DNA of 63,112 bases, filler included, from Octopus bimaculoides (lineage: Eukaryota), in the NCBI RefSeq assembly GCF_001194135.2. It is 8 parts of 8 records of this genome, joined end to end, with 100 filler letters (N's around TTAATTAATTAA, not from the genome) between each part and the next. Parts side by side here need not be neighbours in the genome. Positions count along the whole stretch, not along the records: positions 1 to 16,757 come from NC_069000.1; 7 more parts are not named here. One strand, given 5' to 3'. Under the pieces are notes generated by a model that had not been told where the DNA came from, did no database searches, and was given only the letters and a program-made list of their open reading frames with translations. Positions 12,687-13,820 of the stretch are shown piece after piece; the first letter of the stretch is position 1, and the number at the start of each line of letters is the position of its first letter. Made by a program: the position numbers and the translations under genes.

Positions 12687-12878
12687 GTCACCTACGACGT
12701 TCACCAAAAACGTGACTTGATCGATATCTTCGATAAAATCAATGACACGCTTCGTCGTATTGTTGGTCACCTTCACGGAAAATTCCATGATTTACATGAT
12801 TTCTTGCACCAAGCTATTGCCCATGGAAAAGACAAGTTGAAACCTCACATAGAAAACATCAAGAGTTTGGCTAAGACC
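12687..12878 (+). CDS. Secreted helical protein, penultimate exon ([64 protein letters not shown])
   Basis: TTTTTGCAG|G acceptor, donor GTAAGT, 64 open codons (phase 0 to 0), amphipathic periodicity. Confidence 0.88.
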
Positions 12879-12956
12879 GTAAGTTTTATATTTCTTTGAC
12901 TATTTTTACCTTCAATTATCATTCACTTCTTTGTCTCCCTCTCTCACACTCCCTCT

Positions 12957-13296
12957 ATCTATCTATCTATCTATCTATCTATCTATCTATCTATCTATCT
13001 ATCTATCTATCTATCTATCTGTCTGTCTGTCTGTCTGTCTGTCTGTCTATCTATCTATCTGTCTATCTATCTATCTATCTATCTATCTATCTATCTATCT
13101 ATCTATCTATCTGTCTATCTATCTATCTATCTATCTATCTATCTATCTATCTATCTATCTATCTATCTATCTATCTATCTGTCTGTCTGTCTGTCTATCT
13201 ATCTATCTATCTATCTATCTGTCTATCTATCTATCTATCTATCTATCTGTCCGTCCGTCCGTCTGTCTGTCTGTCTGTCTGTCTGTCTGTCTGTTT
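12957..13296. repeat. (CTAT/CTGT)n tetranucleotide microsatellite
   Basis: Read directly; explains the LSIY-repeat ORFs. Confidence 0.97.
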
Positions 13297-13658
13297 ATCT
13301 CCCTCTACATCCATCCATGCACGCACCCCACCTCCACACATATGTGTATGTTTTGCGTTTGCCTATAAATCCGTCTGTTTAACTATCTGCCTGTATATCT
13401 ATTTTAATTTTGACCATCTAGTTTTCTACCAATATTTACTGGCATGTGTTTATATGCATGTAGGCACTTAATTGCAAAAACGCACACACACACACACACA
13501 CACACACACACCCACACAAATACATACACACACAAACACTTACACACACATACATACATACATGCAGTATTACAAGTATCTGTGAGAATCTTATAATATA
13601 GGCATAAAATATAATTGACAGTTACTATACGTTGCTTTCTTTTAAAATTATATAACAG

Positions 13659-13820
13659 TTCATTGACCACATCAACATGGTGAGTGCGAAAGTAGCTCAA
13701 CAAGCTTTGGAATTTTTCAAACCCTGGGCTTCGAAACTCGGTGACACATGGACCAAACTTGTTAAAGACATCCACGAGCGTCTGCAGAAGTTGCACCCTA
13801 CAGCTCTTCCCCTTTATTAA
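13659..13820 (+). CDS. Secreted helical protein, last exon (FIDHINMVSAKVAQQALEFFKPWASKLGDTWTKLVKDIHERLQKLHPTALPLY*)
   Basis: AACAG acceptor in phase 0, open to TAA at 13818-13820, AATAAA 37 nt downstream. Confidence 0.87.
   Translation, partial: FIDHINMVSAKVAQQALEFFKPWASKLGDTWTKLVKDIHERLQKLHPTALPLY

Follow-up and report, generated by a model that had tools for sequence, protein, structure and literature searches.

Does a Lys-Arg pair in an uncharacterized protein of Octopus bimaculoides mark the place where a histidine-rich helical tail is cut free and, if so, what kind of product would that tail be? The question is raised by a locus in a window of 63,112 nucleotides (the whole stretch of DNA analysed: eight parts of eight records of RefSeq assembly GCF_001194135.2, joined with 100 filler letters between parts; all coordinates count along it). 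Its first part, positions 1 to 16,757, comes from NC_069000.1 and carries on the plus strand a gene partly annotated as LOC106879077. The original prediction took the Lys-Arg (KR) pair for a target of proprotein convertases and the tail for a possible pH- or metal-gated antimicrobial or lipid-binding peptide, by analogy with clavanins and piscidins. The reading that we prefer, with chances that we judge to be about even, is that of a secreted pro-protein cut after a conserved arginine; the cut would free an apolipoprotein-like module binding lipid or membrane, with a His-based sensitivity to pH or metal in octopods. Three features are central to this reading (an arrow marks a cut or an exon border):

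12708–12713, plus strand: Lys-Arg (HQKR↓D, codons AAA CGT), candidate proprotein-convertase site in the frame of exon 12687–12878
12741–12749, plus strand: N-D-T sequon in helix 1, possible N-glycosylation site on the candidate released module
12765–12827, plus strand: His-rich stretch, 21 residues with six His

The coordinates, splicing and residue counts of the original prediction were all confirmed. Exons 6 and 7, when spliced, make an open frame, VTYDVHQKR↓DLIDIF...PLY, identical to the C-terminus of NCBI LOC106879077 (152 amino acids (aa), chromosome CM046620.1); the KR is followed by 108 residues, and of the 10 His among them six fall within a stretch of 21. The order of parts in the reconstructed protein is signal peptide, acidic helical N-terminal region, KR site and 108-aa C-terminal helical module. 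The protein is predicted to be secreted: the signal peptide encoded by exon 1 matches those of the relatives P0004, P0002 and P0005 (P0002–P0064 are labels for relatives of the Octopus protein), and it was judged by the −3/−1 rule, with n, h and c regions and A at −3 and −1 read from the sequence.

The family was recovered by an exhaustive HMMER search, which gave 52 proteins at E < 1e-3 (phmmer E from 1e-48 to 1e-4); a word-indexed protein search was insensitive, with one and then five matches. Among molluscs the members come from Argonauta and cephalopod-like transcripts, the chiton Liolophura, the limpet Patella and the abalone Haliotis; the others come from the brachiopod Lingula, the nemerteans Lineus and Tubulanus, the horseshoe crab Tachypleus and spiders (Trichonephila). 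All named members carry the label ‘uncharacterized’, searches of Pfam with the Octopus protein and its relatives showed no entry for the family, and a literature search found no paper on LOC106879077, LOC115221193 or the family motif strings. One further member, P0022 (WP_150929198.1), is filed as a bacterial hypothetical protein of ‘Acinetobacter baumannii’ while its signal peptide is eukaryotic and its basic site reads EKR↓S; since it groups with a K/E-rich subgroup to which members from spiders and the horseshoe crab also belong, it is probably an animal, possibly arthropod, contamination of a bacterial assembly.

Two motifs, N(I/V)K.(L/I)A..F..H and (E/Q)ALEFF(K/R)P(Y/F/W)...LG.LW, are conserved in the family, both within the C-terminal module. 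The Octopus module contains both, the first as a 12-residue segment and the second as QALEFFKPWASKLGDTW, and the Octopus protein shares with other members the signal peptide, the variable helical N-terminal region and an Arg directly before the module. The N-terminal regions vary among members and often include weaker copies of the module unit. Two marine metatranscriptome proteins with cephalopod-like signal peptides, P0002 and P0003 (JGI 3300018797), are polyproteins of six and four tandem modules, ∼50% identical to the Octopus module, and have no basic site at the junctions (LERF, LVTF, LVAF). Two tandem paralogues were observed at the Argonauta locus, the upstream one being the orthologue of the window gene; in Argonauta hians BAAFZT010000021.1 (1–2380, 10001–16047) they encode 288 aa and 281 aa and lie upstream of a WD40-repeat gene. 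No second copy was seen in the window before the 6.1-kb N gap following position 16757. In comparison with the Argonauta orthologue, exons 6 and 7 have 82% amino-acid identity and 54% third-position identity, with a nonsynonymous rate (dN) of 0.144, a saturated synonymous rate (dS) of ∼2 and dN/dS of ∼0.07, values that indicate strong purifying selection on these exons.

How does the KR site behave in this family? In an alignment with one module per protein (46 proteins, 117 columns) the column of the KR arginine has R in 80% of the proteins and ranks 11 of 117 by relative entropy, level with residues of the core motifs. Of all 55 modules, 41 have Arg at P1 and 33 have K or R at P2; in many relatives P4 is basic as well, R or K (REKR, RHRR, KKKR, RETR), and EKR↓S and GKR↓ are also seen. 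The site stands where the variable acidic region gives way to the conserved module, and here confidence of the structural model is lowest (mean predicted local distance difference test score, pLDDT, of 52 for residues 1–10). A signal peptide combined with KR at an accessible domain junction is what one expects of a convertase substrate. Recognition by a subtilisin-like convertase would explain the pattern best, as a purely structural Arg would need no basic P2 and P4, and we consider processing of the Octopus protein plausible. The original prediction is thus upheld as far as the dibasic KR is a candidate convertase site. A second cut, which it had suggested at the RR of TLRRIVG, is not supported: in other cephalopod-like members the place is taken by HR, HK, AR or GR, the two columns rank 74 and 81 of 117, and the pair, at positions 23–24, is in the middle of predicted helix 1.

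The same signals, GKR included, bound upstream units in P0011, P0012, P0015 and P0016. In these four proteins short repeated units flanked by GKR, KR or RR precede the module; the repeats of P0015 are SGNWISVGGTGY-GKR (twice) and DILGDLLNGVV...GGL-GKR (twice). GKR is the classical amidation plus dibasic signal, and the repeated units look like amidated bioactive peptides sharing one precursor with the module.

What would be separated by a cut at KR are two parts of opposite charge. The N-terminal region, 155 aa as reconstructed with NCBI's doubtful 23-aa segment in place of the gap-hidden exon 5, has net charge −13.6 at pH 7.4; the C-terminal module has a calculated net charge of +4.1 at pH 7.4 and +12.5 at pH 5.5, a swing of ∼8 units. 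A cationic module did not turn out to be a family trait, as net charge of the module ranges across members from −10 to +9 and is mostly near zero. The protein has no cysteines. The recurrence of hydrophobic residues, pointed out earlier from a few segments, proved to extend over all 108 residues with a single coherent period of 3.655 residues (98.5 degrees, z ∼7); none of 5000 shuffles matched the observed periodicity peak anywhere between 60 and 180 degrees. Pro residues are at module positions 53, 86 and 111, with spacings of 33 and 25. A 22-residue internal match in the module (16–37 versus 89–110) was weak (E = 0.8), and an internal repeat was rejected as not significant. The AlphaFold model built with the alignment (pLDDT 74, predicted template modelling score 0.58) has five helices, at residues 6–26, 34–46, 52–67, 74–91 and 93–109, and its pLDDT is 88–94 for residues 61–100 and 78–94 for 51–110; the single-sequence model was poor (pLDDT 58) and served for secondary structure only. 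The N(D/N)T sequon on helix 1 (INDTL, LNDTL, LNNTI) is present in most cephalopod-like members, while members from other phyla do not have it.

These properties are reminiscent of exchangeable apolipoproteins, which are well known in vertebrates (ApoA-I, ApoA-IV, ApoE) and insects (apolipophorin-III, apoLp-III). We know of no description of an equivalent in molluscs, brachiopods, nemerteans or chelicerates, and a literature search for such equivalents in these four groups found none. Like ApoA-I, ApoA-IV and ApoE, the Octopus protein is predicted to be secreted, has no Cys and has Pro-punctuated amphipathic helices with an 11/3 hydrophobic period; basic residues are at the polar/non-polar interface in both, though Octopus has His in Lys places. 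The helix starts are also alike in ApoA-IV (LLPHANEV and LEPYADQL) and Octopus (LKPHIEN and FFKPWASKL), and human apolipoprotein A-IV was the best sequence match in the PDB (E = 0.0019). In Pfam the top match of the Octopus protein was the apolipoprotein family PF01442 (16.3 bits, E = 0.008), which was also the match recurring most often, in 22 of 37 members, with the best E = 4e-15 still under the cut-off. ApoLp-III (PF07464) was matched below threshold by nine of 37 members (best 29 bits); the Octopus protein had no PF07464 match in Pfam, and no apoLp-III structure was among the Foldseek results against the PDB. The gathering cut-offs are 90 bits for PF01442 and 36.3 bits for PF07464.

The differences from vertebrate apolipoproteins are considerable: scores are 16–55 bits versus 90, there are seven exons versus the vertebrate four-exon layout, and the Octopus protein has a distinct, sharply conserved C-terminal motif and an internal KR between its halves. 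Apolipophorin-III, a helical bundle of ∼160 aa that opens on lipid surfaces and acts in immunity too, is likewise a secreted helical protein of an invertebrate, but it has no two-part precursor. The physics of the sequence are thus like those of an exchangeable apolipoprotein, but membership in the apolipoprotein family fails the sole quantitative test available.

The enrichment in His is greater than chance would give. Ten or more His in 108 residues have a probability of 4e-4 at a background of 2.5%, and six or more in 21 residues a probability of 1e-5 (∼8e-4 corrected for 88 windows). Just two of the ten, H54 of the KPH motif and H68 of FIDH, are family-wide. H28 and H103 are common to cephalopod-like members; beyond Octopus, H30, H34 and H37 occur only in the two Argonauta paralogues and, in part, in the transcript P0054; and H41, H46 and H110 are, among three octopod sequences, in Octopus bimaculoides only. 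Of the two features whose conservation the original prediction proposed to check, the arginine is conserved across the family, and the His cluster is largely specific to a small subgroup. A 13-residue segment of the His-rich stretch is invariant in both Argonauta paralogues.

Elsewhere in the family Lys is more frequent than any other residue at the positions of H30, H41, H46 and H103. A helical wheel puts H30, H37 and H41 at the polar/non-polar interface, at angles of 58–98 degrees to the hydrophobic moment; the angle for H34 is 118 degrees. Class-A amphipathic helices of apolipoproteins have Lys or Arg at this interface. The restriction of these His to one lineage, the Lys in other members and the interface position together suggest that the His stripe is a lineage-specific Lys-to-His retuning of interface positions. 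The description of the stretch as a His-rich amphipathic helix thus stands in that His residues flank the hydrophobic face and the calculated charge rises at low pH; it does not stand as a trait of the family. The stripe also creates HxxxH and HxxH pairs, which are potential ligands for Zn or Cu. An imperfect tandem duplication of 9 nt (CATGATTTA CATGATTTC) underlies HDLHDF (12789–12806); the xDL-xDF pattern predates it, as squid-like members have ADLKDF.

A mechanism in three steps can be proposed. A subtilisin-like proprotein convertase would cut after the conserved Arg in the secretory pathway and free the module from its acidic partner, a step suggested by the conservation of the Arg across phyla. 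About five amphipathic helices with a hydrophobic face in 11/3 register (3.66 residues) would then bind a lipid or membrane surface, which might be a lipoprotein, a microbial membrane or another hydrophobic interface; the physics of the sequence and the sub-threshold similarity to apolipoproteins point this way. The third step is speculative: the octopod His residues, replacing mostly Lys at positions flanking the hydrophobic face, would switch charge between pH 7.4 and 5.5 or, alternatively, respond to Zn or Cu bound by the HxxxH and HxxH pairs, and with the change of charge the affinity for the surface or the opening of the bundle should switch.

Is the gene that would encode such a precursor intact? 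NCBI has two models here, a 196-aa protein (3696–10380) and LOC106879077 (12526–13820), separated by assembly gaps. We observed that tblastn with P0004 (Argonauta hians, 281 aa) gives six collinear exons in the window, including the signal-peptide exon. There is probably one plus-strand gene of seven exons at 5941–13820, encoding a protein of ∼280 aa, which NCBI splits in two:

5941–6016, plus strand: exon 1, start codon and signal peptide MKFFLAVLLVACAQA↓FSIKNMIERE; phase-1 donor GAGAAG↓gtaggc
7537–7648, plus strand: exon 2, acidic helical N-terminal region AFDLLISQATSELETMAIKEVESALTDEGLHVTSFER; tblastn match to P0004 residues 26–65, 42% identity
9480–9579, plus strand: exon 3, N-terminal region, continued SVIHKVSTMVGETIKKEMTKIVSEVTTTGDFKVA; tblastn match to P0004 residues 63–95; borders cttcag↓C and GCT↓gtgagt
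10216–10342, plus strand: exon 4, N-terminal region, continued VAEKIIEKLRDAATMMADGLHMDTETTEAFFHELMKDIEALE; tblastn match to P0004 residues 96–139; phase-1 donor GGAAA↓gtaaga
11689–12385, no strand: assembly gap of 697 N, probable location of exon 5 (∼24 aa; Argonauta version QGHALIDINFGKLFEHVFDSTVAT)
12687–12878, plus strand: exon 6, junction, KR site, helix 1, His-rich helix 2 and start of helix 3; 100% match to LOC106879077
12879–13658, plus strand: intron 6, 780 bp, GT..AG, mostly microsatellite, (TCTA/TCTG)n at 12954–13294 and (CACA)n at 13483–13562
13659–13820, plus strand: exon 7, core of the conserved module (FIDH...ALEFFKPWASKLGDTW...); acceptor ataacag↓TTC; stop TAA at 13818–13820
13858–13863, plus strand: AATAAA polyadenylation signal, 38 nt past the stop, read from the sequence

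Exons 1–4 have canonical splice sites and are mutually in frame. Exon 1 has 72% identity to residues 1–25 of P0004 (tblastn) and joins exon 2 in frame; exon 2 has the acceptor ttttaag↓CT and the donor CGCAG↓gtatgt and is in frame with exons 1 and 3; exon 4 ends at the same position as in the Argonauta gene. The borders of exon 6 are tttttgcag↓GTC and ACC↓gtaagt, and its protein is 84% identical between the two Argonauta paralogues. The Argonauta gene has seven exons, with a separate exon 5 at ∼970 bp upstream of exon 6. In Octopus this distance falls into the N gap 11689–12385, tblastn with P0004 found no counterpart of exon 5 in the readable sequence of the window, and the Argonauta orthologue shows no conservation with the 300 bp that separate the gap from exon 6; on these grounds exon 5 is probably inside the gap.

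The collinear tblastn matches make the 196-aa model the 5′ half of the same gene, and its interpretation as a tandem paralogue was rejected. Also rejected, as spurious, was the N-terminus of LOC106879077, i.e. its first 35 residues (MTKYLNVCDLTVDNVIL at 12527–12576, an intron of 56 nt, IITFLCRDIVKNFCGFLQ). This segment starts directly after the 697-N gap and translates the polypyrimidine tract and acceptor (12686/12687) of exon 6, its residues are in none of the relatives, and its only AG acceptor (12506–12507) has the wrong phase for the donor of exon 4. When exon 4 is read past its donor, as in the NCBI 196-aa model, a stop TAG is reached at 10378–10380, with AATAAA at 10401–10406; this may be a short isoform with the N-terminal region only, or a chance occurrence in an AT-rich intron.

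Several observations weigh against the reading of a convertase-processed, lipid-binding module. P4 of the Octopus site is His (H-Q-K-R↓D), which leaves it without the furin consensus; the site would be of PC1/3 or PC2 type. None of the six junctions of the six-module P0002 has retained the basic site, so that cleavage is not obligatory for the module, which can also function uncleaved. The apolipoprotein matches are far under the Pfam cut-off (16 bits here versus 90), and PF01442 is known to pick up long helical proteins of bacteria that are unrelated to apolipoproteins, e.g. Agrobacterium GPR and a Rhodococcus lipid-droplet protein. The family profile, when compared with PDB sequences, had no matches apart from designed or generic helical proteins (ApoA-I at E = 0.025), and we do not claim apolipoprotein homology for this reason. 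Foldseek with the alignment-based model found no structural match in the PDB (best E = 2.9), and the His-rich helix is the part of the model with the lowest confidence (pLDDT 58–62). Finally, with exon 5 absent from the assembly, intactness of the Octopus bimaculoides gene is demonstrated only in part.

The alternative nearest to the original prediction is that cleavage at KR frees a His-switch antimicrobial effector, akin to clavanins and piscidins, that disrupts membranes at low pH or with Zn or Cu; we regard it as unlikely. It does account for the order of an anionic propiece and a cationic C-terminal piece, which is the classic layout of antimicrobial precursors: Hydra arminins and other invertebrate precursors of antimicrobial peptides and neuropeptides have the same order of signal peptide, acidic part, KR and basic product, and relatives of the Octopus protein also have multiple KR- or GKR-bounded units. 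The conserved P1 Arg, the strong amphipathicity of the tail with its pH-dependent charge, the short GKR-flanked amphipathic peptides upstream in P0015 and P0016 and the tandem paralogues in Argonauta are in agreement with it as well. However, what the family conserves is the C-terminal product, and this product is not consistently cationic. The likeness to clavanins and piscidins extends to a His-rich amphipathic helix, His beside the hydrophobic face and a predicted pH-dependent charge, but those peptides are free, of 22–25 aa and often amidated, whereas in Octopus the His-rich helix lies inside a conserved domain of 108 aa. Antimicrobial peptides are mostly short and evolve fast; the analogy with a fast-evolving peptide of 20–25 aa breaks down for a domain with dN/dS of 0.07 and motifs common to several phyla. 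No conserved flanking sites that would release the 21-residue stretch were found, the sole conserved site giving 108 aa and the internal RR being unconserved, and the conserved N-x-T sequon on helix 1 is a further argument against such an effector. Octominin, a His-rich peptide of Octopus minor, was rejected as a relative: this peptide is a fragment engineered from the N-terminus of ‘defense protein 3’, with 92% identity to fish chrysophsin-2.

Cleavage may also not occur at all. The Arg would then be structural (a helix cap or a salt bridge), and the protein would act uncut in haemolymph or a secretion, either as a soluble carrier of helical-bundle type or as a surface-active protein, a possibility that we likewise regard as unlikely. 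The fused modules of P0002 and P0003, the 14 of 55 modules in which P1 is not Arg, the lack of the P4 Arg needed by furin and the single-sequence model, which puts KR within a helix, all agree with it; yet frequent K/R at P2 and R/K at P4 are expected of convertase recognition, not of a structural Arg, these KR and GKR signals also enclose the upstream repeats of relatives, and the junction is of low confidence in the model. Could the freed module be a signalling ligand instead, a helical hormone- or cytokine-like product of a prohormone that acts on a receptor and not on lipid? The signal peptide, the dibasic signals and the amidation-type GKR sites of relatives would fit, and the very strong conservation of ALEFF(K/R)PY..DLG.LW across phyla suggests a specific partner. 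But the absence of cysteines, a hydrophobic register unbroken over 108 residues (more typical of surface-binding helices than of cytokine bundles), four to six tandem modules per protein, unusual at such ligand size, and the lack of a match to helical cytokines in Foldseek against the PDB make this very unlikely. Least probable, to an extreme degree, is that the Octopus bimaculoides copy is a broken gene or an annotation artefact whose His-rich tail is not part of a secreted protein. Such a view would draw on the missing exon 5, on the stop and AATAAA that follow exon 4 and on the two separate NCBI genes; against it, the six detectable exons are all open and have canonical splice sites, exons 6 and 7 are under strong purifying selection by the rates above, and the missing exon corresponds to the 697-N gap at the expected distance.

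The surroundings of the gene are of eukaryotic character, with microsatellites, N gaps and GT-AG introns. A 151-aa open reading frame (ORF) on the minus strand at 2809–3264 has a helix-turn-helix (HTH) of Tc1/mariner-type transposases (HTH_23 E = 1e-7; Sleeping Beauty HTH E = 8e-6) and is a predicted transposon fragment upstream of the gene. Two adjacent minus-strand ORFs of 161 and 89 aa at 823–1578 have no Pfam match and may be retroelement remnants. The microsatellites include (TA)20 at 12467–12506, beside the N gap, ∼85 copies of (TCTA/TCTG) at 12954–13294, (CA)n at 13483–13562 and (ATAC)n at 14233–14287; the five N gaps in 16.7 kb are probably linked to such repeats. No RNA family was found in the window by Rfam.

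A practical result is that the 196-aa model and LOC106879077 should become one merged gene, and at least 50 ‘uncharacterized’ proteins could receive a family profile and a name. What appears to be new is an unnamed family of apolipoprotein-like helical proteins with a convertase-type site in lophotrochozoans and chelicerates. The octopod Lys-to-His changes offer a natural experiment on how interface charge tunes binding. A wider conjecture, which we hold to be rather improbable, is that the family is the protostome counterpart of the exchangeable apolipoproteins, homologous or convergent, processed by convertases and retuned in octopods to a switch sensitive to pH or to Cu and Zn. As its members are conserved and predicted to be secreted, with a convertase-type site and apolipoprotein-like helical physics, the family could fill the apolipoprotein gap in these phyla or be a new class of host-defence pro-protein.

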